Under the pieces are notes generated by a model. It had not been told where the DNA came from and did no database searches. It saw only the letters and a program-made list of their open reading frames with translations. Of a stretch of 64,000 nucleotides of DNA, positions 27,632 to 60,089 are shown one piece after another (the stretch's first letter is position 1; every line of letters starts with the position of its first letter). A program made the position numbers and the translations under genes. Origin of the DNA: Mobula hypostoma (taxonomy: Eukaryota); assembly GCF_963921235.1 (NCBI RefSeq), contig NC_086103.1, forward strand, positions 72,850,001 to 72,914,000, read 5' to 3'.

Positions 27632-27683
27632 ATGGCTGTTACTGACGTTGTGGCTCATTTGTTAATGATGTTACTTCTGTTAG
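27632..27683 (+). CDS. TIM-like copy 1 exon 1: signal peptide MAVTDVVAHLLMMLLLL(G)
   Basis: Kozak gcgATGG, hydrophobic leader, phase-1 donor G|GTACGT at 27684; conserved in all three units. Confidence 0.88.
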
Positions 27684-28362
27684 GTACGTTTCTGAAAGCA
27701 GGAATCGAATTAGCTTGTTCAGTCTTGTTGCTTTAACCTCCTGGATGCAATAATTGAGATGGAGACTGTGTGAGTGAGGGACCCGGGAGGGTACAGCCGA
27801 GATATTAATGGGGCGGGGGTGGTGGTGGAGGTGAACTGACGGGGTGAGTGAACTTGGAGGACTGATCATTGCTGATCCGAATGGACCATGAAACAAGACC
27901 AAAGCTCGGAATATCCCCTGATCATTGCGGTGAAGGTTTGGGAGCACAGTAGGTATGTGAGTGGGAAAATGAATCCCAGATCCAAATTGGCAAGAGAGGA
28001 GAATGATTTCAATACTCGAGATCACAATCGGATCTTCGTACCTTCCCTGCATGTTTCTGTATCAGTGACTGAACAGTTCTCTGAAATGTTACCGCTGGAC
28101 TATCGGTTGTGTCAAAACTACAGAAATGCAATGCGATCACCACATCGTATTCCATGTCAGCTGAGGGGTGGGCGTTTCGGAATGTCGGGAATACCTAATA
28201 GTATCCACATCCCTTTGAATTTTCGTAATATTCCTCAGATGCCGCCCGGCAGGTAAAATGGATCACATTGCCGTTGCTCGGGCAGGTTTCTAAACTGTGG
28301 GCACACCCGTCTGATCATCTCATTCAGCGCCATCTGTAACTTTCTTTCCTGGATTGTTTCAG

Positions 28363-28710
28363 GTCGCGTCGCCTTCGTCTCTGGGACAAACGTGCGAGGA
28401 GTCACGGGACAGTCGATCACACTGCCATGCCGCTATTCTGTCGGAAAATATGTCAAAAGTGCGATGTGCTGGGGTCGGGGACAGTGTGGTGTTATGAACT
28501 GTGGAGATGAACTGATCAGAACAAATGGAGACAGAGTAACTTCTGTAACATCCCAGAGATACAGACTTGGTGGTAGAATTGCGGCAGGAAATGTGTCGCT
28601 CACTATAAATGATCTACAGAGAGAAGATAGCGGCTGGTATTGCTGCCGTGTGGAGATTCCGGGACCGTTTAATAATCTGAAAACGAATTTGAATCTCCGG
28701 GTTTTGGACG
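28363..28710 (+). CDS. TIM-like (HAVCR1/TIMD4 family) copy 1 exon 2: IgV domain
   Basis: tttcctggattgtttcAG acceptor, G|GTAAG donor, 348 nt phase 1-1, open. Six-Cys TIM pattern LPC..CWGRGQC....C..VSLTI..DSGWYCCRVEIPGPFNN. Confidence 0.95.
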
Positions 28711-28765
28711 GTAAGCAGCTCAATATTACATGATTCTGTGTCAGAAATGGCGGCATAGTGGTGTA

Positions 28766-29019
28766 GCCGCTATTCTGTCGGAACATATGTAAAAAGTGAG
28801 ATGTGCTGGGGTTTGGGGACAGTGTCCTTTTAGCGCCTGTGGCCACGGGTTGATTAGAACAAATGGAGACGAGTAACTTCTGTAGAATTGCGGCAGGAGA
28901 TGTGTCGCTCACTATAAATGATCTACAGAGAGAAGATAGCGGCTGGTATTGCTGCCGTGTGCGGATTCCGGGACAACATAATGATTTGAAAACGAATTTA
29001 AATCTCCTGGTTTTGGACG
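28766..29019 (+). pseudogene. Truncated, frameshifted fourth TIM IgV exon copy (no acceptor, donor retained)
   Basis: Starts mid-exon (gccgctattctgtcgga); +1 frameshift near WG, -1 near NGD, ~28-bp deletion; encodes CPFSACGHG and RIPGQHND; ends GACG|GTAAG. Confidence 0.9.
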
Positions 29020-29054
29020 GTAAGCAGCTCAATATTACATGATTCTGTGTCAGA

Positions 29055-29330
29055 AATGGCGGCTCAGCGGTGTAGCTGCTAGGTAATTGCCCCACATCTC
29101 CTGAGATTCAGGTTCGATCCCGCGCTCCTGTGCGGAAATCATACGTCCTTCCTTGCTTCCTCCGGGTGCTCTGAGATCGCAAGAACAGGTTAGTAGATTA
29201 ATAGGTCAGCATAAACTGTCGCTAGTGTAAATTAACGGCAGGACAATGGCGGGAGCCAAGTTTCTGGGGAGATATGGGGGATGTATCTGATGGGAATCTT
29301 GAGCAGTTGATATGGTCTCGATGGGCTGAA
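29055..29330 (+). mobile_element. Degenerate tRNA-derived SINE (V-SINE/HE1-like) in intron 2; further copies at about 29555-29850 and 39045-39340
   Basis: A-box-like GGCTCAGCGG (29061-70), B-box GGTTCGATCC (29111-20), followed by cctccgggtgctc body. Confidence 0.6.
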
Positions 29331-30269
29331 CGGCCCTCTTTTGCCCCTGAGAACATAAGAAATACCACAATGAATACTGATTTATTTTTCACTGTTGTAT
29401 ATCCACTAGAATGGATAATGTGCAGGATGACAACGGCAGGACAGTACAATGTGATATGGACAAAGAGTGCATTGTCTGAGATTCTGTGGAGAGAAATGTT
29501 TTGTGTGTTGCTCAGATATACAACACAAAACAATGTTACATGATTCTGTGTCAGAAATGGCGGCATAGTGGTGTAGCTGCTAGTACATTTTCCACAGATC
29601 TCCTGTGATTCTGGTTCCATCGGGAGCTCCTCTGTTTAGTGTGCGGAAATCATATGTCCTTGCTTGCTTCCTCCGGTGCTCTGAGATCGCAAGAACAGGT
29701 TGGTAGATTAATCGGTCAATGTAATCAGCCGCTAGTGTAAATTAACGGCAGGACAATGGCGTGAGCCAAGTTTCTAGGGAGATATGAGGGATGTATCCGA
29801 TGGGAATCTTGGGCAGATGATATGATCTCGATGGGCTGAACTGCCCTCTTCTGCCCCTGAGAACATAAGAAATACCACAATGAATACTGATATATTGTTC
29901 ACTCTGTTGTATATCCAATAGAATGGATAATGTGCAGGATGACAATGGCAGGACAGTACAATGTGATGTGGACTAAGAGTGCATTGTCTGAGATTCTTTT
30001 GTGTGTTGCATCAGATATACAACACATAACAATGGGCTTCTGGTGTCAATAACTGTGCTAATGCCGCTGTCATAGGAGCATAACAAACCGAAGCAGCAGT
30101 TGTCCATTGGACATTCCTGGCTGTTCCAACATTCATTCAGAATGTGGTTGATCTTGTTTCTACCTCAGCGCTATTTTCCACCACTGTCCTGTATCCCTTG
30201 ACTCCATGTCCAGACATCTATCAATCTGTGTTTTGAACAAATATGAAGAATGTGCATTTACAGCCTAAA

Positions 30270-30870
30270 GGATCATGACCACAGAAAGATCTTCTTATGC
30301 TGAGCTTTACAAGATACTAATCAGGCTGCACTGAGAGTATTGACTACAGTTTTGGGCCCCTTATCTTAGAAAGGATGTGTTGTCATTGGAGAGATTCCAG
30401 AGCAGGTTCACAGGGATGATTATGAGATTCAAGGGTTTAACATGTGAGGAACATTTGGCAGCTTTGGGCCTGTACTCGCTGGAATTTAGAAAAATGTGGG
30501 AAGAAATCATTGAAAGCTACAGAATGTTGAAAGGACTAGATAAGGTGGTTGTGGAGCGGATGTCTCCTCTGATGGGAGCACAGCCTCAAGATTCAGGGTG
30601 ACCCTTTACAACAGAGGTATGGAGGAATTTTTTTTAGCCAGAGAGTAGAAGATCTGTGTAATGCTGTGCCACGGACTTCAGTGGAGGCCAAGTCCGCGCC
30701 TATATTTAAGGTGGAAGTTGATCACTTCCTGATCAGTCAGGGCATCACAGGATAGGGCGAGTAGACAGGTGTATGGGGTTAAGTGGGATCCTTGATCAGC
30801 CGTGATAGAATGGTGAAGCAGACTCAATGGTCTGAATGGCCTCATTCTGCTCCCATGTCTGATGGTTTTA
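30270..30870 (+). mobile_element. Old CR1 3' fragment shared with unit 2 (39760-40385)
   Basis: ORF 30377..30601 ERFQSRFTGMI..GLYSLEFRKM. Confidence 0.8.
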
Positions 30871-31099
30871 TGGTATGAACTGTTCTGATGAAAGGTCTTG
30901 GCCCCAAAAAAAAAACAGTACTCTTAGCTATAGAAACTGCCTGGCCTGCTGAGTTCTTCCAGCAATTTGTGTGTGTTGCTTGGATTTCCATCATCAGCAG
31001 ATTTTCTCTTGTATTTCATGTAAGTTCTAGCTGGCCTGTCTCAAGTTCTAGTTTTCTCAGCCAGGAAAAACACCTTCCTTGCATTTTTTCTGCCAAGTT

Positions 31100-32350
31100 C
31101 TTGAAGGTTTCTGTATGTTTTGTTGAAGTTGGAGAGAGTACAATCCCAATCTACTCAATATCTTCTCATTTAGAAACCCTACCAGTCCTGAATCGTTATT
31201 GCACTCTGCCTACGCAATTATATACTTGCTTAGGTAAGATGTCAAAATAGTCCACTATATTCTTGGGTGCTTTTGCCAAGACATTCTACAAGTACAACAC
31301 GACTTGTTCATTGCTGTATTCAGATTCCCTTGTAAATGATAATCTACCATTTGCACCTACATCAAACCTTGGTCTCTATAAATGTTAACATTGCCTTATC
31401 ACTCTCCATTTAATAACTAATTCACTTTTCTATTCATTGTACCAGAATGGATAAGCTTTAAATTTTTTTACATTGTATTCCATTTGTCATTTTCTTGCCC
31501 TGTCACTGAGCTTGTTTATATAACCTTAACATGAGGAAATCTGCAGATGCTGGAAATTCAAGCAACACACACAAAAAATGTTGGTGAACGCAGCAGGCCA
31601 GGCAGCATTTTTTGTGTGTGTTGCTTATATAACCTTGCAGCCTCTTCACATCCTGCTTTGTGTGCCCAATCCCTCTTGGTCTTACAGTATTGGAAAATTC
31701 AAAATATATAACTTGTTCCCTCATATATTTCATTGCATCTCAGTCCTGAATGATGATGCCTTATTTTGAGATGATGATTCCTACAGGCAAAGTATCTCTT
31801 ACACCTGCCCTTTGAAGCCCTCTCGGAATTTTATACATTTCAATCAGCTCTCCCCCTATTCATCTAAGCTATGTTGTGTGCTGAACATCTGTGTAAAGAC
31901 CAATATCTGTTTCCCTGGAATCAATGAATGAACATTTATTTCTTCTGATCAAGTCTTTTTTATCTGCCTATTGGCTTACTAAGCTTTCAGTGACATGTAC
32001 ACAGACACCCAGATTCTTTGAATATCCAAGCACTCACCATATAACAAAAATCTGTTTTTCTGATGTTCCTACTGAAGTGGATCATGTCACATTTCTCCAC
32101 ATTATATTCTATTCGTCATCTCCTTGTCTATTTAGCCAGTCTTCTCTTTTCCGCTGATTTCTCCTTGCATTCTCTGTAAATCTCACACAGTTAATTAGCT
32201 ATTATTAAATCTTGGAAATGTTGCCCTTGAGCTAAGTCTTTGATATATGTTATGAAGAGAAGAGGGTCCAACCCTATGACTATGGAACTCTACCACTTGC
32301 AGTTTCACAACCCAAGCTTATTCCGTCTCTGTTTACTGTGTTAAACAATG
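31100..32350 (-). mobile_element. Ancient degraded CR1 RT fragment shared by all three units (also about 40600-40960 + 43010-43650 and 62280-62610)
   Basis: Reverse-complement similarity to CR1 RT C-terminal segments; no open frame. Confidence 0.6.
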
Positions 32351-32553
32351 TGGATATCTGAATTAACCCCAATCCAATGTGTTCTAATCAAGTCTAACTG
32401 TGGCAGTTTAAAGATCTTCCAATGGTCTAAGTGCTTATTATCCACAGTTCTCCCTAATCTTTTCTACAAGTTGTATAAGCTTGAAGTGAATGAAATTGCA
32501 TGACAAGCATTGAAAAACATAAAAATAAATTTAATGTTTCTTCTGTGACACAG

Positions 32554-32580
32554 ACAAGCACACAGCTCTGTTAAGCACAA
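32554..32580 (+). CDS. Candidate 27-nt micro-exon 3 of copy 1 (D)KHTALLST
   Basis: tttaat..tttcttctgtgacacAG acceptor, GTAAGT donor, phase 1-1 compatible with exon 2; same length and signals conserved in unit 2. Confidence 0.5.
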
Positions 32581-33182
32581 GTAAGTGTATTATTACACAC
32601 AATGGAAATGATGTTGCTTACTCTGATATCAATGTGTTGATACTCAGATACTCTGATACTCAGATCTCTGATATCAATGTATTTTGTTTGGATAAACTGC
32701 ACTGTTGATTATAAAAGTTAACAGGTATGCCTTGAAATTGATTTTAATTGAAATGTTTATGTTTAGAGCCTTAATATTTGGTGAAGATATTTGCACAAGG
32801 CAAGCTGGGAATGTTTGCCGTTAAAGTGAAAGTAAGACTTGCATTTAATAGAGTGCTTTTAGCACTGAGCAGCCATTGGGGTACCTGTTTCCGCAGACAG
32901 TGATGTGGTGATGATCAGATGTAGATCCTGATTGTAGATTTATTCATTTGATTACCAGTTGTTTAGGAATTGAGTTAATTTCTTGTTCTTAAAGATAATC
33001 AAAGTCATGAAAATACAGAAAGACATAATATGACAATAATAATGATATTGTATCTGTTCATAGAATTTGCAACAAGGTAAACAAATCAGTGACATAGATA
33101 GAAGTAATCCTGATTTCATCAACTTGTGGAAACTTGTCCACAATGTTTAATGAAGAAGCTCAGTGATACTTCAAGAACTTGG

Positions 33183-35323
33183 TGTCATCTGGGGGGCATT
33201 GGTGGTGGACCCAAATGCAAGACACAGACACTGAAGTACTAGGAACAGGACTCGGTGTGTCAGGTAAGCAAGAGAAGTGGGAAGAAAGGGCGCTGGACAT
33301 TGACACAGGCCCTGGACGAGACTAGGATGCAGGGCCTGGGCTAGGACATGGACAAGAAACACGGAACCCGGACAAGGAACTAGGATCTAGAATCCTGGAC
33401 TGGGGACACGGGACTCCAGAACTAGAGCCTGGACAAGGACCCAGAACCTGGGTCTTGGTTGGGACTAGGAACCTCAGAGCCTTGGGCTTGGAACTCAGGA
33501 ACATGGAACACAGAACCAGGACCCCTCCTTGGGAAAAGGACCAAGGGCCAGGGCTCGTACACAACACACAGAGCCAGGATCCCCTCCTTGGGAAAAGGAC
33601 CAAGGGTCAGGGCTCTTTCTGTACATAAAACACTGAGCACAAAGAGACAGTTCTCCACTCAGGGTAGCCGCAAATGGCCGGACCTACGTAGCGAAGGCGA
33701 GGAAACAGAGACAATTCCCACCTCAAGGTAGCAGCAAATGGACGGTCCTACCTAGCGAAGGCGAGGACACAAAGAGGCTATTCCAAACAATGACAGACTG
33801 TTCCTTATCTTGACACAGCAAGGCCCCGGTCTTGCTCTGGCAGTTGAACCTGACGGCATTACAGGCGAGGGTTCAGGCGGAAGGGGAAGGGAAGGGAACA
33901 ATCCAGCAAACAGTCTCTGATTTGCAGAGGATTTATGTGCCAGACTGAAATGAGAATCAGATGCCTGAATTAAAACACCCAACAGAACAAGGGAGAAAAC
34001 AGGAAAACCTGGAAAAGGATCAATGGTCCGGGACGTGAACTGGAATGTAGACTTCATGGACCGGACCATGACAGTATCCACCCCTCCATGGGAGCCTCCT
34101 GGTGACCCAAAAGGCTTCACCAGACGATGGACTACACGGGTGGTTGGGGGAGGGCGGTCAACAGGAGGGAAGCCGGGATGGCGAGAGTAAAACGACAGTG
34201 TCCGTGTCACTTGGTCCATGCTTGACAGGACTGTTCTGTCATCCAGGGGGCATTGATGGCGGACCCAAATGCAAGACACAGACACTGAAGTACTAGGAGG
34301 AGGACTTAGTGTGTCAAGAAAACAAGGGAAGTGGGGAAGAAAGGACGCTGGACATTGATGCAGGCCCTGGATGAGACTAGGATGCAGGGCCTGGGCTAGG
34401 ACGTGGACAAGAAACATGGAACCCGGACAAGGAATTAGGAACAAGGAGCCTGGACTAGGAACCCAGGACTCTGGAACTAGAGCCTGGACAAGGACCCAGA
34501 ACCTGGGCCTTGGTTGGGACTAGGAACCCCAGATCTTGGAGTTGGAAGTCAGGAACCTCGGAGCCTTGGGCTTAAAACTCAGGAACCTCGGAGTCTTGGG
34601 CTTGAAACTCAGGAACTTAAGAGCCTTGGACTTGGAACTCAGGAACCTCGGAGCCTTGGGCTTGAAACTCAGGAACCCAGGAGCCTTGGGCTTGGAACAT
34701 GGAGCACAGAGCCAAGACCCCTCCTTGGGAGCAGGACGTAGGGCCGGGACTCGTACACAGTACACAGAGCCAGGACCCCCTCCTTTGGAATAGGACCAAG
34801 GGCCGGGGCGCTTTCTATACACAAAACACTGAACACAAAGAGACAGTTCTCCACTCAGGGTAGCAGCAAATGGCCGGGCCTACCCAGCGGAGGTGAGGAC
34901 ACAAAAAAACAATTCCCAACACAAGGTAGTGGCAAATGGCCGGACCTACCTAGCGAAGGCGAGGACCCAAAGAGACAATTCCAAACAATGACAGACTGTT
35001 CCTTATTTTGACACAGCAAGGCCCTGGTTTTGCTCTGGTGGTTGAACCTGACAGCATTACAGGCAAGGATGCAGGCGAGGTTGCAGGTGAGGCATCAGGT
35101 GAAGGTTGTAGGCAAAGGCTTCAGAAGGAAGGGGAAGGGAAGGGAACAGTCCAGCAAACAATCCCTGGTTTGCAGAGGTATTTATGTGTCAGACCGAAAT
35201 GAGAATGAAATGCCTCAATTAAAGCACCCAACAGAACAAGGAAGAAAACAGGAAAACCCAGAACAAGGATCGATGGACTGGGCCGTGAACCAGAATGCAG
35301 ACTTCACAGACCAGACCATGACA
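33183..35323 (-). mobile_element. Miniature (TRIM-like) Gypsy LTR element: two LTRs with a 163-bp internal region
   Basis: LTRs TGTCA..TGACA at 33183-34073 and 34237-35323; 5-bp TSD CTTGG; empty site CAAGAACTTGGCAG in paralogous unit 2 (44482-86). Confidence 0.9.
34545..34700. repeat. ~30-bp minisatellite (GGAACCTCGGAGCCTTGGGCTTGAAACTCA)n inside LTR
   Basis: About five degenerate tandem units; only about one unit in the other LTR. Confidence 0.85.
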
Positions 35324-35510
35324 CTTGGAAGATGGAACGCAATGAAGACATATGGGAGATCATCATTTTAGTGCTGCTAATGTAAAAGTAATTTTACTTA
35401 AATGCTAAGTGATTGGATGGTGCTGAACATTAGAAACAAGGTGCGATGATACTCACATCTCTTCAAGAGACTCTCCAGGTGCAAATAATAAGTTACCATT
35501 TATTATTATA

Positions 35511-36055
35511 GAACATAGAACATAGAATAGTACAGCACAGTACAGGTCCTTCGGCCCACAATGTCGTGCTGACCCTCAAACCCTGCCTCCCATATAAGCC
35601 CCCACCTTAAATTCCTCCATATACCTGTCTAGTAGTCTCTTAAACTTCACTAGTGTATCTGCCTCCACCGCTGACTCAGGCAGTGCATTCCACGCACCAA
35701 CCACTCCCTGAGTAAAAAACCTTCCTCTAATATCCCCCTTGAACTTCCCACCCCTTACCTTAAAACCATTTCCTCTTGTATTGAGCAGTGGTGCCCTGGG
35801 GAAGAGGCGCTGGCTATCCACTCTATCTATTCCTCTTATTATCTTGTACACGTCTATCATGTCTCCTCTCATCCTCCTTCTCTCCAAAGAGTAAAGCCCT
35901 AGCTCCCTTAATCTCTGATCATAATGCATACTTTCTAAACCAGGCAGCATTCCTGGTAAATCTCCTCTGTACCCTTTCCAATGCTTCCACATCCTTCCTA
36001 CAGTGAGGTGACCAGAACTGGACACAGTACTCCAAGTGTGGCCTAACCAGAGTTT
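35511..36055 (-). mobile_element. CR1 3' fragment, unit-1 specific
   Basis: ORF 35576..36025 (GLYSLERRRMRGD..FFTQGVV.AWNALP); absent at homologous site about 44660. Confidence 0.9.
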
Positions 36056-37909
36056 TAAACATTAGAAGCTTTAAACATAGGAGTCACAGAGTCATACTGT
36101 AGTTGTACAGAGTCTTGGCAAGACTGCACTGGGCAGGTAGTGGAGAGTTCCAGTTTCTTAACAATGAAAGGACATACCTGCCAAAGAGAGAGAACAATGA
36201 ATAACTGGAGTCACAGAAAGCAATTCACATCACCCTTCCCCCACGCTTCAATGTAGTGAGTGCTGGATATATTTGGAGAGTTCAAGATCAAGTCATTGTT
36301 TGAACACATCGGTCGTCCATTTGGTCAGAATATATCTGAACAGCCCTTTGCATCACCTGGTGTTCAGACATTTACTCTCATCTGGAAATTGCTCACTTAT
36401 CATTGTTTCTCATAAATTGGAGGCACAGTAATCTGAGACAGAATGAATATATATCTGCAGCCTGGATCTGGGGCACTGAGCTTCTTTTTCTTGGTGTCAC
36501 TTTGATCCCTCTGTAAATCATCATCCTAATACCTCCATCCTTTAGTGTTATGTTCAATTCTTTCTGCCAGATTTTTTTTTACCTTTAATGATTGAATATA
36601 AATAATTATCAGTCCCTACATCACATTTAATTACAGTTGTTCTGCATGAAAAATAACTGAATACCCTGGAAAGGGCAAATCAGTCTCGTTCTGTTGTTTC
36701 TGTTCATCTCTTTCTGGCCATTATCATGGTTCATTTTCCCTGCCAACCCTTTCTCACACTCCTTGCTTCCGATCACTTCCCCATCTCCCACTGCCTCCCC
36801 AACTCCTTGATATTTCTTCTTCATATCAGTCCCTCCCAATTACTGGGGTCTGATCTTCATCTCACCTTTACCTGTGAGCTGCCCGGGAAGTGCACCAGAC
36901 ATCTGATGTAGGCAGGTCTGACCACAGCCCCAGTATCACTCCCAGTGTCAGTGCTTATTACAGCATGATTCAATAATTTGCAGTTTGCAGTTCAGAGACT
37001 CTTGAGTCACCATTAAGCCTCTTCACAGTCGGACAGAGAGTGAAAGTACCTTCACTCCTGACCAACAAATAGTCATAGTCATAGTCATACTTCACTGATC
37101 CCGAGGGAAATTGATTTTCGTTACAGTTGCCCCAACCAAGAATAGCGTATAAATATAGCAATATAAAACCATAAATAATTAAATAGTAATATGTAAATTA
37201 TGCCAGGAAATAAGTCCAGGACCAGCCTATTGGCTCAGGGTGTCTGACCCTCCAAGGCAGGAGTTGTAGAGTTTGATGGCCACAGGCAGGAATGACTTCC
37301 TATGACGCTCTGTGTTGTATCTCAGTGGAATGAAATGACCTTGACTCCAGTCTTGAACTGGGTTGACAGACCAAATTTAGACTACCAGTGCAGAACAGGC
37401 TGGTGTTTCCACAGAAAATGGTGGAATCACCTTATCTGGGTCTCTTGATCTCTCACTCACTCCGTACTTCACCCTCGGTTCCGTTCACGTACGAAGCATT
37501 GAAACGTGACACGAAATGACAGGACTCAACCAGACCAGCGACCCAACAGTTCAAACAGCCAGTTGGATACTTGGCAATTTGCCCGTTCGTGTTACTGATG
37601 GACATTTCAGACACGAATTTCTGTTGATGTCGCGTCACATCTGTGATCGGAAGAACTGATTTATCTCAAAACCGGGAACTGAAAGCAATGGTGAAGGAAA
37701 TCCGTGTACGTTTAAACTTTGATGGAAACACCGGGGAGGAGCCGAGTGTTTGATAACACTTGCCCCATTTCTCCGAGGTGTCGGTGAACAACACCCGTGC
37801 TCCTGTGGAAGGAACTCTTGTCCACGACAAGCTGGAAGCAACAGTTTAACTCGCAGCCGCAGCCTCTGCTGCAGCGACACGGAGAGCGGCCGCCACAGTG
37901 TCCGGCGCG

Positions 37910-37961
37910 ATGGCTGTTACTGGCGTTGTGGCTCATTTGTTAATAATGTTACTTTTGTTCG
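37910..37961 (+). CDS. TIM-like copy 2 exon 1: signal peptide MAVTGVVAHLLIMLLLF(G)
   Basis: Kozak gcgATGG, donor G|GTACGT at 37962. Confidence 0.9.
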
Positions 37962-43892: not shown

Positions 43893-43919
43893 ACAAGCAC
43901 ACAGTTCTGTTAGCCATAA
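43893..43919 (+). CDS. Candidate 27-nt micro-exon 3 of copy 2 (D)KHTVLLAI
   Basis: tttaat..ctttcttctgtacacAG acceptor, GTAAGT donor, homologous to 32554-32580. Confidence 0.5.
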
Positions 43920-47707: not shown

Positions 47708-47770
47708 ATTTCTGGAAGATCATTTATGTCCTCCTTATTTCTGGAAGATTATTTATGTCCTCCTTATTTC
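47679..47770. repeat. Three tandem 29-bp units at the CR1 5' junction
   Basis: ATTTCTGGAAGATTATTTATGTCCTCCTT starting at 47679, 47708, 47737; single copy in the sister CR1 at about 1266-1294. Confidence 0.95.
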
Positions 47771-50700
47771 CAAAACCGCGAATTAAACGACATTGAAGGA
47801 AATCCGTGCACGAGGAATGCAGTAGTTATAGGGGATTCCATAGTCAGGGGAATGGACAGGAGATTCTGTGAGCCTGATAGAGATACCCACATGGTGTGTT
47901 GCCTTCCAGGTGCCAGGGTACGGGATGTCTCGGATTGGGACTAGAATATTCTGAAGGGGGAGGGTGAGCAGCCTGTTGTCTTGGTACATGTTGGTACCAG
48001 TGACATAGATAGGACAAAGGAGGAGGTCCTGAAGAGAGATTTCTGGGAGTTAGGAAGGAAGCTGAGAAGCAAGACCTCCAGGGTAGTAATCTCGGGGTTG
48101 CTACCTGTGCCACATGCTAGCAAGGGCAAGAATAGGAGGATCAGGCAAATGAATGCATGGCTGAGAGACTGGTGCAGGGGGCAGGGCTTCAGATTCTTGG
48201 ATAATTGGGATCTCTTCTGGGGGAAGTATGACCTGTTCAAAAATGACAGGTTACACCTGAACTGGAAGGGGACCAATATCCTGGCAGGAAAGTTTAATAG
48301 AGCTGTTAGGGAGGGTTTAAACTAATTTGGCAGGGGGATGGGAACCGGAATGACAGAGCGGAGGAAGGGAAAAACAGAAATAAATCTAAGATAGTGAGCA
48401 GTAAAGATGTCAGGAAAGACAGGCAGGTGATGGGGCAAATGTGTAGCCATTGGGATGAGTTGCAGTGCAATAAAGTTGCAGTGAAATCAAAGCAAAAAGT
48501 ACCAAATACTGGTGTTAAGGTGTTATACTTAAATGCACGCAGCATAAGGAATAAGGTGGATGATCTTGTCGTACAGCTACAGATTGGCAGGTATGATATT
48601 GTGGCCATCACTGAGACGTGGCTAAAGGATGCATGTCTCTGGGAGCTGAACGTCCAAGGATACACGGTGTATCAGAAGGATAGGAAGGTAGGCAGAGGGG
48701 GAGGCGTGGCTTTATTGGTAAGAAATGATATTAAATCATTAGAAAGAGGTGATATAGGATCGGAAGGTGCAGAATCTTTATGGGTTGAGCTAAGAAATCG
48801 CAGGGGTAAAAGGATCCTGATGGCAGTTATTTATAGGCCTCCAAACAGCTGCAGTGATGTAGACTACAAATTACAACAGGAAATAGAAAAGGCTTGTCAG
48901 AAGGGTAGTGTTATGATAATTGCAGGGGATTTTAACATGCGAGTGGATTGGGAAAATCAGGTCCGCACTGGATCTCAAGAGAGAGAATTTGTAGAATGTT
49001 TGCGAGATGGCTTTTTAGAACAGCTTGTTGTTGAGCCCACTAGGAGATCGGCTGTACTGGATTGGGTATTGTGTAATGAACCGGAGGTGATTGGAGAGAT
49101 TGAGGTGAAGGAACCATTAGGAGACAGTGATCATAACATGTTTGAATTCACTGTGAAATTTGAAAAAGAGAAGCCGAAATCTGTTGTGTCGGTATTTCAG
49201 TGGAGTAAAGGAAATTACAGTGGCATGAGAGAGGAACTGGCCAAAGTTGACTGGAAAGGGACACTGGTGGGAAAGACGGCAGAGCAGCAGTGGCTGGAGT
49301 TTATGCGAGAAGTGAGGAAGGTGCAAGACAAGTATATTCCAAAAATGAAGAAATTTTCAAATGGAAAAAGGATGCAACCGTGGTTGACAAGAGAAGTCAA
49401 AGCCAAAGTTAAAGCAAAGGAGAGGGCATACAAGGAAGCAAAAATTAGTGGGAAGACAGAGGATTGTGAAGTTTTTAAAACCTTACAAAAGGAAACTAAG
49501 AAGGTTATTAAGAGGGGAAAGATTAACTATGAAAGGAAGCTAGCAAATAATATCAAAGAGGATACTAAAAGCTTTTTCAAGAATATAAAGAGTAAAAGAC
49601 AGGTGAGAGTAGATATAGGACCGATAGAAAATGATGCTGGAGAAATTGTAATGGGAGATAAGGAGATGGCGGAGGAACTGAACGAGTATTTTGCATCAGT
49701 CTTCACTGAGGAAGACATCAGCAGTATACCGGACACTCAAGGGTGGCAGGGAAGAGACGTGTGTGCAGTCACAATTATGACAGAGAAAGTACTCAGGAAG
49801 CTGAATAGTCTAAAGGTAGATAAATCTCCCGGACCAGATGGAATGCACCCTCATGTTCTGAAGGAAGTAGCTGTGGAGATTGCAGAGGCATCAGCAATGA
49901 TCTTTCAAAAGTCTTTTCTTTTAAAATCTTTTTATTAATTATTATTGAAAATCAACAACAGAAAAAAATACATCAAAATAATCAAGATAACATATCCATA
50001 TGTAAAGTAAAAGTTAAAACTATCAACCGGGCCGAACAATATATCAATAATAATCAATAAACAAAGTATTAAAGCTTTTTTTATATGGAAAAAAGGAAAG
50101 AAAGAAAAAAAAGAACCCTTACTAACTAAAACAGAGAAAACCCCTAATAACTAAAAAAAAGAAAAGAAAACCATTTGGAGCACAAACCCGGAGCTATGAG
50201 CCAAACAAGTTTCTATACAAAAGGACATCAAACCACCAGCCAAACCCATAAACCAAGCATCAGAGAAGTACCATCTGAATTAACTCAAGTCAAATGGTAA
50301 TAACGGCAAAAGAACCTCACCTTTTCTCGAAGTCAAATTTAGGATCAAAAGTTCAACTTCTAATTTTTTCCAAACTAAGACATAACATCACCTGAGAGAA
50401 CCATTGTATCAAAGTGGGAGCAGAGGCATCTTTCCATTTTAATAAAATAGCCCTTCTAGCCAATAATGTGACAAATGCAATTACGTATTGGTTTGATATA
50501 GAAATACCGTGAATATGTTGAGGAATTATACCAAACAAAACTGTCAATTTATTAGGTTGTAAATTGATTTTTAAAGCTTTAGAGATTGTAGAAAAAATAG
50601 ATTTCCAAATTTGTTTCAATACAGAACACGACCAAAACATACGTGTCAATGTAGCTATGTCAGTTTTGCATCTATCACACTGACTATTTACATTAGGAAA

Positions 50701-53700
50701 TATTTTAGACAATCTCTCCTTTGTCAAATAATAATGATGTACAATTTTAAGTTGAATTAAAGAATGACTGGCACAAATCGAAGAAGAGTTAACCAGCTTC
50801 AAAATTTGCAACCAATCCTCTGTTATCAGGGTCATATTAAGCTCTCTTTCCCAATCTTGCTTAATGTTAAGTAAAGGATAGTTATCCTGTTGTAATAGTA
50901 AATTATAAATTTTCCCAATAAAACCTTTCAGTAAAGGGTTCATTTTTAAAATAATGTCTAACAGGTCAGAGCCTTGTATATATGGAAAATTACTTAAATA
51001 TTCTTGTAAGAAATGTCTGACCTGAAGATATTGCAATAAATGTGAGTATGAGAGGGTGTATTTAGTTACTAATTTCTCAAAGGACATCAATCGACCTTCT
51101 TGAAACAAGTCGATAAAGGAAAAAATTCCTTTATTCCTCCAAAGAGAAAAGGTAGGATCACTAAGTGAAGGTTTAAATAAATAGTTTCGATAAATTAAAC
51201 TGAAAAGGTAAGATTTTTTAAGATTTAAAAACTTACAAAACTGGTACCAAATTCGTAATGATTGATTAATCATAGGAATTATATTTAAATAGAAATTTTG
51301 GTTAATTGTACAGGTAAAGGAGCTCCTAATAACGAAGTTAAATGAAATTGTTTCACCATTTTCAATTCCAAATCAACCCAAGATGGTCGTTCCTTTTTAT
51401 CGGTCCAATATAACCAAGAACACGCATAACGTATATTAACGGCCCAATAGTACATTCTTAAATTAGGCAAAGTAAGACCTCCATCCTTTTTTAATTTTTG
51501 TAAATGACATTTTCCAATTCTTGGTCTTTTATTATTCCAAACAAAAGATCAAATAATAAAATCAACCTAATCAAAAAACTTCTTAGTTAGAAAAATAGGA
51601 ATGTTTTGAAATACATATAAAAATTTTGGTAAAATCATCATTTTAACTGCATGAATTCGACTTACGAACGAAAGTGTAAGTGGATTCCATCTAGAAAAAA
51701 TTTGCTTCATAAAATCCACCCAGGGAACTAAATTAGCTCTACAAAGGTCTCCGTAATTTTTAGTGATGATAATACCTAAATATTTAAAAGAATCTGTAAC
51801 CTTTAGTGGAATATTACCATATATAGATGCGGAATCATTTAAAGGAAATAATTCACTTTTATGCAGGTTTAATTTATATCCTGAAAACAATCCAAATTCA
51901 TTTAATAATTTCAATAAGCTAGGAATAGATTCTTCGGGATTCGAAATATAAACCAAAAAATCATCCGCATAAAGGGAGATCTTATGAATAGTCCCATTTA
52001 TAGAAATTCCTTGAATATTTTTAGCTTCACGAAGTGCAATAGCCAAGGGATCCAACATCAAGTTAAATAACAGAGGACTTAATGGATATCTTTGTCTCGT
52101 ACCCCGGGAAAGCTGGAAAAAGGGGATCTACAGTTATTAGAGATAACAGTGGCAATAGGGCTTTTATATATCAATCTAATCCATTTATTAAAATTAGTAC
52201 CAAAGCTAAATTTCTCTAAAACTTTGAATAGATATTTCCATTCAACTTGTATCAAATGCCTTTTCAGCATCTAGAGAAACAACACATTGGGGGGTCTTAG
52301 AGAGGGATGAGTATATAATAGTTAACAATCTCCGAGTATTAGAAAAAGAATAACGGCCTTTTACAAAACCAGTTTGATCCTGAGAAATAATTTTTGCCAG
52401 TATATTCTCCATCCGATTAGCCATTATTTTTGAAAGAATTTTGGCATCCACATTTAATAACGAAATAGGTCTATATGAAGCACAATCAGTAGGGTATTTA
52501 TCTTCCTTAAGAATTAAAGAAATAGAAGCTTTATAAAATGTGGAAGGTAACTCTCCTAACAGAAAAGGATCTTTAAGCATTTCCAACATATAAGGAGTAA
52601 GCAAATGTTCAAATTTTTTAATAAAATCCTGCAGTAAAACCATCCAATCCAGGAGCTTTACCAGATTGCATTGAAAGAATAGCTTTCTGAATTTCTCTTT
52701 CAGTGAAAGGAGCATCAAGAATTTGCTGATCTTCAATAGATATTCTAGGAAAATCAATCTTTTGTAAAAAGGCATACATATTAGAAGGGTCAGCTGGAAA
52801 CAGATTTATAGAGTTCACTGTAATAGTCTTGAAAAAAATTATTAATATCTTCATAATTACTAGCTAAACTAACATCTCCCTTATGAAATTTTTAAAATTT
52901 GTCTTTTAGCTCTAACTGCTTTAAGTTGAGATGCTAATAGCTTGTTACTTTTATCTCCAAACATATAAAATTGACTTTTTAATTTAAGCAAATTTCTTTC
53001 AATAGGATAAGTTAATAGTAAATTATATTGTGATTGAAGTTCAACCCTTTGTTTAAATAAATCAACATTAGGAGAAACTGCATAAGTGTTATCCAGATCT
53101 GGAAATTGTATGTAACTCTATTTTTGTCTATTTCTTAAGTTTAGCCAAATAAGATATTATCTGACCTCGCAAATATGCTTTGAGTGTATCCCATACAATC
53201 AATTTCGAAACATCTCCCGTATTATTAAAAAGAAAGAAATCTTTTATCTGAATCTCTATAAATTTAACAAAGTCCGAACTTTGTAATAAATTTTCTGGAA
53301 AGCGCCAAGGCAAGTTTACATTACTAACATCATTTAACTCAAAAGTTAAGCCTAAAGGCGCATGGTCCAAGACTGCAATAGCATCATATTCACATTTCTG
53401 GACTTTGGACAAAAATCGGAAACCAGCTATAAAATAATCAATTCTCGAATATTTATTATGAACATGTGAATAAAAAGAATAATCTCTGTGATTAGGATGT
53501 AAATTTCTCCAGATTTCTATCAAACCATAATCAGTTAAAAAGGAATTAATAAGTGTTGCCGAACGACTCAAAAGCTGCTGATTGGTTGAACTTTTGTCAA
53601 TCAAAGGGTTTAAAGAACAGTTGAAGTCACCTCCCTTCAGTAGCATATATTCATTTAAGTCTGGTAATAAACCAAGTACATTTTTTTAAAAAAGAAGGAT

Positions 53701-53976
53701 CATCTACATTAAGTCCGTATAGATTAACCAGGGCAATTTTTCTATTACAAATTATTCCTTTTATAATTAAAAATCTACCATTATTATCTGAAACAATGTC
53801 TTCTTGAATAAATATTAGATTTAATAAAAATAGATACTCCCTTTGTCTTATTTTGACAAGTAATATGATATTGAAGGCCCTTCCATGTTTTAAAAGATCT
53901 ATTTTGATCGCCCGTTCTGATATGCGTTTCTTGAGCAAAAATTATATCGGGCTGGAATCGATTAAAAATTTTAAAT

Positions 53977-55713
53977 AACACACATCAAAGTTACTGGTGA
54001 ACGCAGCAGGCCAAGCAGCACCTCTAGGAAGAGGTACAGTCGACGTTTCAGGCCGAGACTCTTCGTCAGGACTAACTGAAGGAAGAGTGAGTAAGAGATG
54101 TGAAAGTTGGAGGGGGAGGGGGAGATCCAAAATGATAGGAGAAGACAGGAGGGGGAGGGATAGAGCCAAGAGTTGGACAGGTGATAGGCAAAAGGGGATA
54201 CGAGAGGATCATGGGACAGGAGGTCCGGAAAGAAAGACAAGGGGGGGGGACCCAGAGGATGGGCAAGAGGTATATTCAGAGGGACAGAGGGAGAGAAAGG
54301 AGAGTGAGAGAAAGAATGTGTGCATAAAAATGAGTAACAGATGGGGTACGAGGGGGAGGTGAGGCCTTAGCGGAAGTTAGAGAAGTCGATGTTCATGCCA
54401 TCAGGTTGGAGGCTACCCAGACGGGTTGTTCCTCCAACCTGAGTGTGGCTTCATCTTTACAGTAGAGGAGGCCGTGGATGGACATGTCAGAATGGGAATG
54501 GGATGTGGAATTAAAATGTGTGGCCACTGGGAGATCCTGCTTTCTCTGGCGGACAGAGCGTAGATGTTCAGCAAAGCGGTCTCCCAGTCTGCGTCGGGTC
54601 TCGCCAATATATAAAAGGCCACATCGGGAGCACCGGACGCAGTATATCACCCCAGTCGACTCACAGGTGAAGTGTTGCCTCACCTGGAAGGACTGTTTGG
54701 GGCCCTGAATGGTGGTAAGGGAGGAAGTGTAAGGGCATGTGTAGCACTTGTTCTGCTTACACGGATAAGTGCCAGGAGGGAGATCAGTGGGGAGGGATGG
54801 GGGGGACGAATGGACAAGGGAGTTGTGTAGGGAGTAATCCCTGCGGAATGCAGGGGGGGGAGGGAAAGATGTGCTTAGTGGTGGGATCCCATTGGAGGTG
54901 GCGGAAGTTACGGAGAATAATATGTTGGACCTGGAGGCTGGTGGGGTGGTAGGTGAGGACCAGGGGAACCCTATTCCTAGTGGGGTGGCGGGAGGATGGA
55001 GTGAGAGCAGATGTACGTGAAATGGGGGAGATGCGTTTAAAAGCAGAGTTGATAGTGGAGGAAGGGAAGCCCCTTTCTTTAAAAAAGGAAGACATCTCCC
55101 TCGTCCTAGAATGAAAAACCTCATCCTGAGAGCAGATGCAGCGGAGACGGAGGAATTGCGAGAAGGGGATGGCGTTTTTGCAAGAGACAAGGTGAGAAGA
55201 GGAATAGTCCAGATAGCTGTGAGAGTCAGTAGGCTTATAGTAGACATCAGTGGATAAGGTGTCTCCAGAGACAGAGACAGAAAGATCTAGAAAGGGGAGG
55301 GAGGTGTCGGAAATGGACCAGGTAAACTTGAGGGCAGGGTGAAAGTTGGAGGCAAAGTTAATAAAGTTAACGAGTTCTGCATGCGTGCAGGAAGCAGCGC
55401 CAATGCAGTCATCGATGTAGCGAAGGAAAAGTGGGGGACAGATACCAGAATAGGCACGGAACATAGATTGTTCCACAAACCCAACAAAAAGGCAGGCATA
55501 GCTAGGACCCATACGGGTGCCCATAGCTACACCTTTAGTCTGGAGGAAGTGGGAGGAGCTAAAGGAGAAATTATTAAGAGTAAGGACTAATTCCGCTAGA
55601 CGGAGCAGGTGGTAGAGGGGAACTGATTAGGTCTGAAATCCAAAAAGAAGCGTAGAGCTTTAAGACCTTCCTGATGGGGGATGGAAGTATATAAGGACTG
55701 GACATCCATGGTG
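53977..55713 (-). mobile_element. Penelope-like element (RT + GIY-YIG), 5'-truncated, inserted in L1 ORF2
   Basis: ORF 54784..55524 (MGTRMGPSYACLF, FLRYIDD); ORF 54393..55247 (VIYCVRC..LYIGETRRRL..RFAEH); 9-bp TSD ATTTTAAAT (53968-76 / 55714-22). Confidence 0.93.
54037..54074 (-). ncRNA. Minimal hammerhead ribozyme motif (PLE)
   Basis: Minus strand TAGTC-CTGACGA-AGAGTCTCGGCCT-GAAAC-GTC/GACTG; one mismatch in helix II relative to the 4461 copy. Confidence 0.7.
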
Positions 55714-58700
55714 ATTTTAAATGTCTTCTTTCGCTTAATAGGGTGATTCCAGCCACGTACATTCCAACTAATAACGTTTATCTGTTTAAGTACCATTGGA
55801 TATTATTCTTAAACACGACAATACACGCATACCATCGCGGGCTAATCAAAGATGGCGGTGATGAATATAACCAAATAGAAAACGCGCATGCTCCGGAACT
55901 CCATAATGGGGAAAAATACAAAAGTGTGTGTGAAAAAAAATCCCTCAATAAACCCTAAAATACAAAAATACCCCCAAACCTCCCACCATCCCCAAAGAAG
56001 GAAATCCGGCAAAAGAAAGAAAGGCCGGAACGCATCCCCAAGAAAAGATATAAGAACGGAATTCCGCGTGCTGCTTAATTTAAATAATGATTAAAAGTTT
56101 TTTCTCCCCATTCCCCCCCTTACAACGAAAATACGTAACCTTAAAATAAGAAAGCCCAGCGAAGAAAAATTGTTTGTACTTAATCATCGAAAATAGGCTA
56201 AAGGAATGCGGAGACAGTCTCCAAAGACACCGAAACAATATTATTAACCCAAACAGTTTAATCTCTAAAGAGAGAAAATCAACACCATTATTCTTTAACT
56301 TACTACCTTATTTAACAAAAAATTAAAGCTAATTATCTATTACTAAACACTCCATAATATAAGAAAAAAATCTATATAAACTGCAAGCAAACTATCACTT
56401 AATTAATAAAGAAAAAGAAAAATAGAAACAGATAATCAAACCAGTTTACAATCTATCCGCTGTATTAATTCACTCCGTATACTAAACAGTCTTCAAAAGA
56501 AAGTCATTCTTTAATCAAACCAAGAAGACCACCTCTTCTTTAAGTAATCCATCAATCAAAAGATATCTTCAGCATACCGAAATCTTCAAAACCTGTTTTC
56601 TTTCAGAAAATTATTCGGAGACTCTAATATCCTTCATACTTCAGCCGATTCCACAATAGAATTGACAAAATCCAATGCCGCTTGGGGATCCAAGAAGACA
56701 CGAGGGGTAGAGTCTTTAGGAAATAACTTCAGTTTTTCTGGATATCTCAGGGATGGAAAAAAAGTTTTTTCGTAAGCGATTTTCATGACCGGTGTGAATT
56801 TGATCCGTTGTTCCATAACTTCCCATGGATAATCTTAATAAAGACGGATCTCGGAACCGTTAAATTTAAAAACTTTCTGTTTTCTTGCACGTTTTATGAT
56901 TTGATCTTAAACTTTAAAGCGAAGAAAGTTGACTAAAATTGGTCGAGTTTGACGAAGTATAAATTCTGTGAGCTCTTTCAATCTCGGGAGGCTGAGATAG
57001 AATATCTGGGAACAGAGATTGAAACAGATTGGCAAAATAATCCAATAGATTCCCAGATTCAGAGTGTTTCGGAAGACCCAGAATACAAATGTTATTCCTA
57101 CGAGACTTTGCCTCCAAATCGAAAATTTTGCGTTGAGCCTGTTCCAGTCGGGTTGAAATATCCGCAATCTGACGTTTCGATTCTTTAAACTCAGTATTCA
57201 AGGAAAGAATATTTTCCTCAATAGTCTGTAAACTCTGTCGAAACGACTTCAACTCAGAGGTGTTATTATCCATTTTGTTATTGAGAGCCATCAATGTACG
57301 TTCCAAACGCTCAGCCCAGACAGGCATATCTTCTGATTTTTCTTTTGAAGTTTTTTCCTTTCCATTGCTGGGTTCAAAAGGCTGTTTTCCACTTCTTAAA
57401 GGATACGACAAAATGACCACTATTTCCCTCTAAGATCCAAAAAATAAAAGTTGAATAATTCAAGGTTTAGACTGGGGAAAAGGAGGAATTAAAGGCAGCC
57501 ACAAAATTTATGTGTTACTCCATTGAGCTGCAGGCGGATTCCCGATCTTTCAAAAGTCGATAGATTCTGGCATGGTTCCGGAGGACTGGAAGATTGCAAC
57601 TGTCACTCCGCTATTTAAGAAGGGGGCAAGGAAGTAAAAAGGAAATTATAGACCTGTTAGCTTGACATTGGTGGTTGGGAAGTTGTTGGAGTCGATTGTC
57701 AAGGATGAGGTTACAGAGTACCTGGAGGCATATGACAAGATAGGCAGAACTCAGCATGGATTCCTTAAAGGAAAATCTTGCCTGACAAATCTATTACAAT
57801 TTTTTGAGGAAATTACCAGTAGGCTAGACAAGAGAGATGCAGTGAATGTTGTATATTTGGATTTTCAGAAGGCCTTTGATAAGGTGCCACACATGAGGCT
57901 ACTTAACAAGATAAGAGCCCATGGAATTACGGAAAAGTTACATACGTGGATAGAGCATTGGCTGATTGGCAGGAAACAGAGAGTGGGAATAAAGGGATCC
58001 TATTCTGGTTGGCTGCCGGTTACCAGTGGTGTTCCACAGGGATCAGTGTTGGGGCCGCTTCTTTTTACATTGTACATCAACGATTTGGATTATGGAATAG
58101 ATGGCTTTGTGGCTAAGTTTGCTGACGATACGAAGATAGGTGGAGGGGCCGGTAGTGCTGAGGAAACAGAAAGTCTGCAGAGAGACTTGGATAGATTGGA
58201 AGAATGGGCAAAGAAGTGGCAATGTTGGAAAGTGTATGGTTATGCACTTTGGCAGAAGAAATAAATGGGCAGACTATTATTTAAATGGGGAAAGAATTCA
58301 AAGTTCTGAGATGCAACAGGACTTGGGAGTTCTCGTACAGGATACCCTTAAGGTTAACCTCCAGGTTGAGTCAGTAGTGAAGAAGACGAATGCAATGTTG
58401 GCATTCATTTCTAGAGAAATAGAGTATAGGAGCAGGGATGTGATGTTGAGGCTCTATAAGGCGCTAGTGAGACTTCACTTGGAGTACTGTGGGCAGTTTT
58501 GGTCTCCTTATTTAAGAAAGGATGTGCTGACGTTGGAGTGAGTACAGAGAAGATTCACCAGAATGATTCCGGGAATGAGAGGGTTAACATATGAGGAACG
58601 TTTGTCCGCTCTTGGACTGTATTCCTTGGAGTTTAGAAGATTGAGGGGAGACCTCATAGAAACATTTTGAATGTTGAAACGCATGGACAGGGTGGATGTG

Positions 58701-59223
58701 GCAAAGTTGTTTCCCATGATGGGGGAGTCTAGTACAAGAGGGCAGGACTTAAGGATTCAGAACAGAAATGCGAAGAAAGTTTTTTAGTCAGAGGGTGGTG
58801 AATCTATGGAATTTGTTGCCACGGGCAGCAGTGGAGGCCAAGTCATCGGGTGTATTTAAGGCAGAGATTGATAGGTATCTGAGTAGCCAGGGCATCAAAG
58901 GTTATGGTGATAAGGCGGGGGAGTGGGACTAAATGGGAGAATGGATCAGCTAATGATAAAATGGCGGAGCAGACTCGATGGGCCGAATGGCCGACTTCTA
59001 CTCCTTTGTCTTATGGTCTTATGGTGTAGACTTTGATGGTAACGCTAGGGAGGAGCCGAGTGTTTGATAACACTTGCATCTTATCTTCAGGGTGTCGATG
59101 AACAACACCCATGTTCCTGTGGAAGGAACTCTTGTCCACGACAAGCCGGAAGCAACAGTTTAACTCGCAGCCACAGCATCTGCTGCAGCGACACGGACAG
59201 CGGCCGCCTCCGTGTCCGGCGCG

Positions 59224-59275
59224 ATGGCTGTTACTAGTGTTGTGGCTCATTTAACAATAATGTTTCTTCTGATGG
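59224..59275 (+). CDS. TIM-like copy 3 exon 1: signal peptide MAVTSVVAHLTIMFLLM(G)
   Basis: Kozak gcgATGG, donor G|GTACGT at 59276. Confidence 0.88.
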
Positions 59276-59741
59276 GTACGTTTCTGAAAGCAGGAATCGA
59301 ATTCACTTGTTTAATCTTGTTGTTACAACTTCTTGGAATGCAGTAATTGAGGTGGAGCCAGTGTGTGAGTGAGGGAGCCTGGACCCTGAGTGGTGCCGGG
59401 TCTGCCGGGTTTGAAGATTGAGGGGTGATCTTGGATGACTGACTAGTGCTGATCTGAATGGACCTGATCACTGTGTATTGCACAATCATTGCGGTGAAGG
59501 TTTGGTAGCACAGTGGGTATGTGAGTGGGAAAATGAACGAGAGGCTGGATCTGTGATCAGAGGCGTCCGTTCGATTCCCACTGGGCAGTTTGGGGATTTT
59601 CCGTAATATTCCCCCGATGCCTCGCAGCAGGTAAAATGGATCAGTTTCTCAATGCTGGGACGGGTTTTCAAACTGTGGACACACCCTCTTTCATCATCCC
59701 ATTCAGCGCCATCTGTAACTTTCTTTCCTGCATTGTTTCAG

Positions 59742-60089
59742 GTCGAGTCGCCTTCGTCTCTGAGACAAACGTGCGAGGAGTCACGGGACAGTCGATCACA
59801 CTGCCATGCCACTATTCTGTCGGAAAATATGTAAAAAGTGCGATGTGCTGGGGTCGAGGACAGTGCCCTTTAAGCGGCTGCGGACACGTGTTGATCGGAA
59901 CAAATGGAGACAGAGTAACTTCTGTAACATCCCAGAGATACAGTCTTGGTGGTAGGATTGCGTCAGGAGATGTGTCGCTCACTATAAATGATCTACAGAG
60001 AGAAGATAGCGGCTGGTATTGCTGCCGTGTGGAGATTCTGGGACTGTTTAATGATCTGAAAACGAATTTGAATCTCCGGGCTTTGGACG
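59742..60089 (+). CDS. TIM-like copy 3 exon 2: IgV domain
   Basis: Canonical AG/GTAAG, 348 nt, six Cys, CPLSGCGHV loop, FG-loop EILGLFND. Confidence 0.95.

Follow-up and report, generated by a model that had tools for sequence, protein, structure and literature searches.

The 64,000-nucleotide (nt) stretch of Mobula hypostoma DNA analysed here (the window; contig NC_086103.1, positions 72,850,001 to 72,914,000 of the forward strand) carries three cassettes on its + strand, each made up of a 52-nt leader exon and a 348-nt exon encoding a six-cysteine IgV domain of the TIM type. The cassettes and the repeat units that hold them are numbered U1, U2 and U3 in the order of the strand, the V exons of the first two are called V1 and V2, and positions are counted from the first letter of the window (Table 1). 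The subject of this analysis is the relation of U1 and U2 to the TIM-family gene that begins with U3, and the use that this gene may make of V1 and V2.

Three leader and IgV cassettes and the gene that begins in the third

The three cassettes share their signals throughout. The context of the start codon (GGCGCGATGG) is common to U1, U2 and U3, and the leader donor (GTACGT), the V acceptor (...TTGTTTCAG, a canonical polypyrimidine tract ending in CAG) and the V donor (G followed by GTAAGCAG) are identical in all of them. Both introns flanking the V exon are of phase 1 in every cassette, and the spliced leader plus V forms an open frame of 133 codons, with a hydrophobic, signal-like start and six Cys, in each unit. 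In pairwise comparison the V exons are 92.5–97% identical; as they lie on the same strand and are of symmetric phase, inclusion of any of them preserves the reading frame. The original prediction, which had described three units with a Kozak ATG, a 52-nt leader, an open 348-nt six-Cys IgV exon and phase-1 splice sites, was accurate to the base.

Identity of the V domains was established by comparison with known structures and profiles. Using phmmer against PDB, the top 15 chains were all IgV domains of TIM-4, TIM-1, TIM-2 or TIM-3 (E from 5e-30 to 2e-20), while the next family after the TIM chains was pIgR, at an E of 1.6e-11; the Pfam V-set matched the V domain at 5e-18. All six Cys of all three V exons align with those of TIM-4. 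In the structures of TIM-4 and TIM-1, the xFND motif of the FG loop (an Asn-Asp pair) is the metal-ion-dependent ligand-binding motif. It is found as PFND in U2 and LFND in U3 and is altered to PFNN in U1. The likeness to the mammalian TIM-4 and TIM-1 IgV domains (PDB 5f7f, 5dzn, 2or8 and 3bi9) thus includes the six Cys and the FG motif and extends over the whole domain (E = 5e-30), whereas the FG loops differ in detail: the mammalian TIM-4 loop reads WFND, so that the Trp at its tip is replaced by Pro (U2) or Leu (U3), and U1 has FNN, not FND. Products with these V domains would be phosphatidylserine-receptor-like, with differing ligand-pocket loops.

A search of 1.84 billion representative proteins returned 1139 matches, the best of which are ray proteins; the RefSeq names of these best matches are TIM/HAVCR-like, and they come from Hypanus sabinus, Mobula birostris, M. 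hypostoma, Hemitrygon akajei and Pristis. Among them, the M. hypostoma protein P0173 (‘TIMD4-like', 242 amino acids) is identical to the leader plus V of U3 over residues 1–133, with zero differences. P0173 consists of leader, IgV, a Ser/Thr/Pro-rich stalk, a transmembrane (TM) helix that contains an Arg (LIFLLCWTARVSVF...) and a short tail. Its gene spans 24.1 kb and ends about 19 kb past the window, thus its mucin, TM and tail exons lie beyond position 64000. U3 is the true 5′ end of an ordinary, already annotated TIM-family gene of M. hypostoma and hence no orphan cassette.

Two tail types were found among the ray TIM-like genes (P0173, P0170, P0178 and P0169). In one, an Arg-containing TM helix (CWTARVSVF) is followed by a short tail, adaptor-coupled in appearance; the other has a longer cytoplasmic part with a Tyr motif, ENIYQ (P0178 and P0169). 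From their sequences, the two types look like a paired set of activating and signalling receptors.

Duplication, divergence and loop types of the V exons

Self-comparison of the window by blastn resolved the repeat units. A unit opens with about 200 nt of upstream DNA; leader, intron 1 and V exon come next, followed by about 6 kb of further DNA. This DNA after the V exon is collinear with the start of U3 intron 2 (60120–60567 corresponds to 39194–39628, and 62291–62582 to 31626–31912), which shows the units to be duplicates of a single gene's front end whose 3′ breakpoint falls within intron 2. U1 and U2 are tandem partial 5′ duplicates of the P0173 gene, upstream of a single constant region. 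Partial-duplicate pseudogenes, the fallback of the original prediction, are a live rival and are weighed below. At the 5′ side, a sensitive blastn of the upstream regions placed the start of the U1–U2 homology 17 nt before the ATG, and the upstream segments of U2 and U3 diverge by 11%, which is the neutral rate.

Divergence between U1 and U2 is unevenly distributed. In aligned noncoding DNA, 438 of 4980 sites differ (8.8%) and 56 indel events were counted, as compared with 10 of 348 sites (2.9%; Fisher P = 2e-5) and no indel, against about 3.9 expected (P = 0.02), in the V exons. For the U1–U2 framework, the Nei-Gojobori proportion of nonsynonymous differences (pN) is 0.014 (3 of 214 sites) and that of synonymous differences (pS) is 0.057 (4 of 71 sites), while the intron rate is 0.088; nonsynonymous change in the framework is thus about six times below the neutral rate. 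The probability of three or fewer such changes between U1 and U2 is 5e-6 at the neutral rate and 0.014 even at half of it, so that both V copies look constrained, and constraint on both V1 and V2 is the simplest reading of these counts. The leader exons, with 4 and 9 differences in 52 sites, diverge at the neutral rate.

A second pattern emerged from the comparison of U2 with U3. Against an intron rate of 0.123, the codons of the CC′ and FG loops stand far higher, at a pS of 0.43 and a pN of 0.26 (P = 2e-4), and the framework has only 7 differences in 285 sites (P = 2e-9). Two types of CC′ loop, GVMN-CGDELIR and P(S/L)(R/S)G-CG(H/D), are common to Mobula, Hypanus and Hemitrygon, whereas the V frameworks are species-specific among the three genera. 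By these comparisons, the V exons are mosaics, with frameworks homogenised between units and CC′/FG loops of two types, which points to gene conversion that homogenises the frameworks beside two loop types older than the split of these genera.

Conversion lends itself to a rival explanation of the low divergence, in which U1 and U2 are inert partial duplicates from unequal crossing-over, their V exons having been tidied by germline conversion from functional paralogues and their RNA being noise or the product of paralogues. That conversion took place is evident, both from the homogenised frameworks as against the very old loops and from the U3-type broken V copy patched into U1, and the neutral evolution of the leaders and upstream DNA is what inert leftovers would show. 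Conversion alone would, however, lower pS and pN alike, while the observed pN/pS of about 0.25 fits purifying selection. The broken copy beside V1, with its U3-type CC′ loop and a still intact GTAAGCAG donor, shows what an unprotected V copy looks like; neither U1 nor U2 has lost a splice site, the ATG context or any of the six Cys, and no indel separates their V exons. Beside the broken copy, a local duplication of intron DNA was also noted, 29030–29485 matching 29531–29997.

Constant exons, RNA and surrounding repeats

To look for constant exons of U1 and U2, 20 ray TIM-like proteins representing both tail types served as tblastn queries (word size 2, low-complexity filter off, E up to 1–10). 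The 64 kb yielded no match to mucin, TM or tail sequence, all matches being limited to the leaders, the three V exons and the one broken V copy; had a TM exon been present at the ~90% identity usual among these duplicates, this search would have detected it. Neither a composition scan nor tblastn revealed a mucin stalk for U1 or U2 within the 64 kb (that of U3 is encoded outside the window), and no TM helix or cytoplasmic tail was found for them in the 64 kb (those of U3 are both in P0173, outside the window). The absence of mucin and TM exons from units 1 and 2, as originally described, is thus borne out by tblastn, by the composition scan and by RNA coverage, and the tblastn search with TIM mucin, TM and tail exons that had been proposed with it, run over the 64-kb window, yielded no constant exon.

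RNA was represented by Logan contigs from four runs (X1–X4) of two organisms, with species and tissue inferred; these were aligned to 37700–43699, where the introns served as the silent control. RNA depth was zero at 38100–38499 in all four runs, and in the intron after V2 (39100–39699) it was 0–1.4, being zero in most runs; the contigs therefore represent spliced RNA, not DNA. Within 37700–43699, contigs lie only over the leader of U2 (L2), over V2 and over high-copy transposon segments.

Three sets of contigs are informative. The first, X4 record 25 (584 nt), reads as a spliced 5′-untranslated region (5′-UTR) plus leader, V and 66 further letters; its differences from U2 are U3 letters, in agreement with the annotated P0173 transcript, and this U3-type contig is the only one that continues from the V exon into a further exon. 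The second, X1 record 1, matches V2 at 38663–38785 with 0 differences, over a segment in which 3 positions tell V2 apart from U1 and 4 from U3; the 66 letters upstream of the match neither fit the intron nor align anywhere in 37700–43699. The third set, from the other organism (X3), is 97–98% identical to V2 at a depth of 12–45 and carries U1-type loop letters together with 38926 G>A (Glu to Lys), in common with the second IgV domain of P0169 from M. birostris. One contig of this set ends at the donor (39013), beyond which it has a single letter that is not of the intron. V exons of the U1/U2 type are present in spliced RNA. No V-to-V joint was seen in the RNA contigs aligned to 37700–43699.

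A segment of intron 1 in U2 (38522–38556) is homologous to the alternative first exon (MLVRFPPSSFGIFRNIPHMPPTG) of the Hypanus isoforms P0017, P0153 and P0154. Its reading frame does not run on into the V exon in Mobula. The segment is a candidate source of the 5′ part of X1 record 1, whose CAG ahead of V2 agrees with the segment's end at 38556.

The RNA bears on two further explanations. Each unit might have constant exons of its own, unrelated to known ray TIM tails and hence unrecognised, and a hydrophobic open frame present in both units (36661–36807 and 45254–45400), the sole shared match by composition and hydropathy, would be the candidate for them. Its divergence of 7.6% is no better than that of its surroundings, the U2 tail at 43700–46050 is absent from the listed RNA runs (share of words present, 0.00), and the contigs upstream of that tail are confined to L2, V2 and high-copy transposons as described above; the frame was rejected, and this explanation is hardly tenable.

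The other explanation, put forward as the first option of the original prediction, is that of secreted IgV-only decoys or opsonins, consisting of leader plus V and ended by donor read-through or by a small terminal exon. Read-through of the V donor would indeed add only seven codons (GKQLNxT) before a stop in all units, and short leader-plus-V RefSeq models exist in Hypanus (P0151, 140 amino acids), Amblyraja (162 amino acids) and Carcharodon (168 amino acids). Yet the GTAAGCAG donor is kept in all copies, the RNA contigs end at or splice from it and the intron that follows is near-silent (depth ≤1.4 at 39100–39699), neither AATAAA nor ATTAAA occurs within 800 nt of any V donor, and the U2 tail is in no listed RNA run. 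A secreted form is on these grounds very improbable. Short leader-plus-V proteins (62–198 amino acids) from Mobula were not found, although such proteins may hide in clusters with a longer representative.

Around the cassettes, several families of repeats were recognised. The block between U2 and U3 also contains an AT-rich L1-like element and a Penelope-like GIY-YIG element. The former, at 50300–54000 on the − strand, has 30% GC, several broken frames and a composition unlike the rest of the window; fragments of the latter kind were located at 54393–55524 (− strand) and 60537–61319, one of them within U3 intron 2. Two copies of a long interspersed nuclear element (LINE), at 1–1296 and 46412–47708, share 96% identity, and the reverse-transcriptase frames of both are long and open (400 and 520 amino acids); recent activity of this family is probable. 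At 16000–18000, a GC-rich island (57% GC) contains overlapping open frames, one of which includes an integrase zinc-binding (H2C2) domain, making a remnant of a long terminal repeat retroelement likely. In the insertion specific to U1, a + strand open frame (34524–34793) is 76% identical to the C-terminal 109 residues of M. birostris P0014, and this automatic model thus ends in satellite-derived sequence. The same frame was tried as a constant exon and rejected: its only acceptors give phase 0, incompatible in frame with the phase-1 V donor, and the window has no mucin exons ahead of it.

Table 1. Cassettes, repeat units and other features of the window
Feature	Position	Strand	Description
U1 leader exon	27632-27683	+	52 nt, MAVTDVVAHLLMMLLLLG, donor GTACGT
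U1 IgV exon	28363-28710	+	348 nt, phase 1-1, six Cys, CC′ loop CGVMNCGDELIR, FG loop PGPFNN
U2 leader exon	37910-37961	+	52 nt, MAVTGVVAHLLIMLLLFG
U2 IgV exon	38666-39013	+	348 nt, phase 1-1, six Cys, CC′ loop CDVTNCGDELIR, FG loop PGPFND
U3 leader exon	59224-59275	+	Exon 1 of the annotated TIMD4-like gene (protein P0173)
U3 IgV exon	59742-60089	+	Exon 2 of the P0173 gene; CC′ loop CPLSGCGHVLIG, FG loop LGLFND
Start of P0173 intron 2	60090-64000	+	Collinear with post-V DNA of U1 and U2; carries transposable element insertions
Repeat unit 1 (U1)	27615-37663	+	From self-blastn; leader, V exon, broken V copy, intron-like DNA with unit-specific insertions
Repeat unit 2 (U2)	37710-46001	+	Upstream DNA, leader, V exon, intron-like DNA; LINE insertion at ~40964-43057
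U2 upstream/5′-UTR segment	37710-37909	+	Homologous to U3 59024-59223
U3 upstream/5′-UTR segment	59024-59223	+	X4 record 25 covers the homologous 5′-UTR and leader
Truncated, frame-broken V copy in U1	~28766-29019	+	No acceptor, first ~23 codons missing, internal deletion
Intron-1 segment	38522-38556	+	Ends ...GGCAG/GTAAAA; U3 counterpart 59569-59630
U1-specific repeat/satellite insertion	33183-35323		30-nt-period array at 34499-34698
Transposon block between U2 and U3	46002-59023		13 kb; LINE reverse transcriptase and endonuclease open reading frames

Possible use of V1 and V2 and comparison with known systems

The relatives of V1 and V2 include V domains of two-IgV proteins. In a tree of V domains, U3 coincides with P0173, and V1 and V2 have their nearest relative in the second IgV domain of P0169 from M. 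birostris (path 0.062), at a distance similar to that between V1 and V2 themselves (path 0.064). P0169 is a two-IgV model of 407 amino acids from a 92-kb gene. The Hypanus sabinus models P0152 and P0001 (327 amino acids, 51-kb gene) likewise have two IgV domains, and they differ from each other at two leader residues only, which indicates alternative leader exons. In these ray models, V is joined to V in frame (...LD G RVAF...) before one set of mucin, TM and tail, and the CC′ types are the same as those of the window; on the other hand, the models come from other species, P0169 has the other tail type (ENIYQ), and no equivalent model exists at this locus. Frog models contain four to five TIM-like IgV domains.

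V1 and V2 are symmetric and have no constant exons of their own, hence their sole route into a membrane protein is in-frame splicing onto exons of the U3 gene. That they are used as coding exons by such splicing is the preferred reading here and, in our judgement, an evenly balanced proposition. With 348 nt, phases 1-1 and strong acceptors and donors, V1 and V2 would still be coding exons. In a transcript that starts at or before U1 or U2, the V exon would join the next V acceptor, later leaders, which are without an acceptor, would drop out of the chain, and the transcript would continue to the mucin, TM and tail exons of U3, giving rise to forms with two or three IgV domains. The most likely product would be this V-V chaining, with V1 and V2 as extra N-terminal IgV domains; alternative use of single V exons, by direct skipping from V to mucin, would be possible yet less likely, and not the default. 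By either path, different ligand-pocket loops would be placed on one shared stalk, TM helix and tail. Constrained V exons next to neutral leaders and promoters fit such use as internal exons better than they fit independent first-exon cassettes. We consider it unlikely that the locus goes further and forms a variable-head TIM system, in which two old loop types, shuffled by conversion over a shared stalk, TM helix and tail and expressed singly, each cassette from its promoter, or in chains with two to three IgV domains, would provide a small phosphatidylserine-receptor-like repertoire.

Several observations weigh against the use of V1 and V2. The upstream segment shared by U2 and U3 (~185 nt) has no copy in the 27 kb before U1. 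Neither V1 nor V2 is contained in any M. hypostoma protein model of 160–507 amino acids, and the two-IgV ray proteins are automatic gene models, not cloned cDNAs. Joining of V1 or V2 to any downstream exon was not seen in the X1–X4 contigs, the letters flanking V2 being unread. X1 record 1, at a low depth of 3.5, does not reach the diagnostic CC′ loop and may derive from an identical paralogue that was not seen; moreover, it reads CAG immediately ahead of V2, where a leader would leave TCG, TAG or TGG and a V exon ACG. The low divergence of the V exons could stem in part from gene conversion and not from selection on these copies, and pS is low in the framework too, though for U1–U2 not significantly below the intron rate.

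The account of U1 and U2 as inert partial duplicates draws on the lack of conserved upstream DNA in U1, on the missing protein models, on the single low-depth contig as the only V2-exact RNA, and on the fact that U1 and U2 own no constant exons. It has to accommodate, besides the purifying pattern of substitution, that the gene model of M. birostris has the orthologous V type as a coding exon, and that this type occurs in RNA at a depth of 12–45. We regard inert duplicates as a serious, though less probable, rival.

Within the evenly balanced case for splicing of V1 and V2 into the U3 gene, a strict one-of-N arrangement after the manner of protocadherins or UGT1A would give each cassette its own promoter and join its leader plus V directly to the shared constant exons. 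The order of cassettes followed by one constant region is as such a system would have it, the cassettes differ chiefly in their ligand-pocket loops, U2 and U3 have upstream DNA, ATG context and leaders in common, and Hypanus isoforms put alternative leaders on one V exon. The strong V acceptors, however, predict that downstream V exons are included and not skipped, promoter-side DNA and leaders show no constraint, U1 is without the shared upstream DNA, no such M. hypostoma transcript or gene model was found, and the other cluster genes (P0170 and P0173) each own a separate constant region; strict one-of-N use is quite improbable. The second option of the original prediction, alternative cassettes spliced to one shared constant region downstream of the window, was thus right about the layout, whereas no joining transcripts were seen and the acceptors predict chaining.

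TIM receptors are commonly treated as molecules of one IgV domain and one gene. If V1 and V2 are spliced into the U3 gene, rays would diversify a receptor for phosphatidylserine and apoptotic cells at its binding pocket, by adding or swapping IgV domains while sharing one signalling stalk, the Arg in the TM helix being suggestive of adaptor coupling; a feature cloned only for chicken TIM4 would then extend to the base of the jawed vertebrates. If they are not used, the locus would be a clean example of 5′ partial duplication and gene conversion maintaining reservoirs of V exons in immune clusters, and also a warning that automatic models from such clusters, among them two-IgV proteins and tails derived from satellites or transposons, should be checked against transcripts.

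Literature searches for TIM genes in cartilaginous fish and for immune receptors with V cassettes before a shared constant region returned nothing relevant. The initial impression that no TIM gene of such architecture had been described holds only in part, as a duplicated IgV exon has been described in chicken TIM4 (TIMD4), where two near-identical IgV exons are alternatively spliced and isoforms with one and two IgV domains were cloned (PMC4913284). Ray and chicken genes are alike in their tandem, near-identical IgV exons of one orientation, whose inclusion or skipping would preserve the frame. They differ in that the second IgV exon of chicken lies inside the gene, with linker exons, and is proven by cDNA (PMC4913284), while the extra V exons of the ray keep their own leaders and, in U2, upstream DNA as well, lie 10–31 kb upstream and are of putative use. 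Relative to the P0173 gene as annotated, U3 represents its own exons, and U1 and U2 place two more intact V exons ahead of its annotated start.

With the clustered protocadherins and UGT1A, the ray locus shares tandem variable 5′ modules that precede one constant region and differ in the ligand-binding part. In those systems, however, the variable exons are single first exons without an acceptor, each with a conserved promoter, whereas the ray module consists of two exons, its V exon has a strong acceptor and its promoter-side DNA shows no constraint; because the ray V exons have acceptors, membership in that class fails on its defining feature. U3 is already known as the start of a TIM gene, and the orphan cassettes U1 and U2 are a variant of TIM gene clusters and of the duplicated IgV exon of chicken TIM4.

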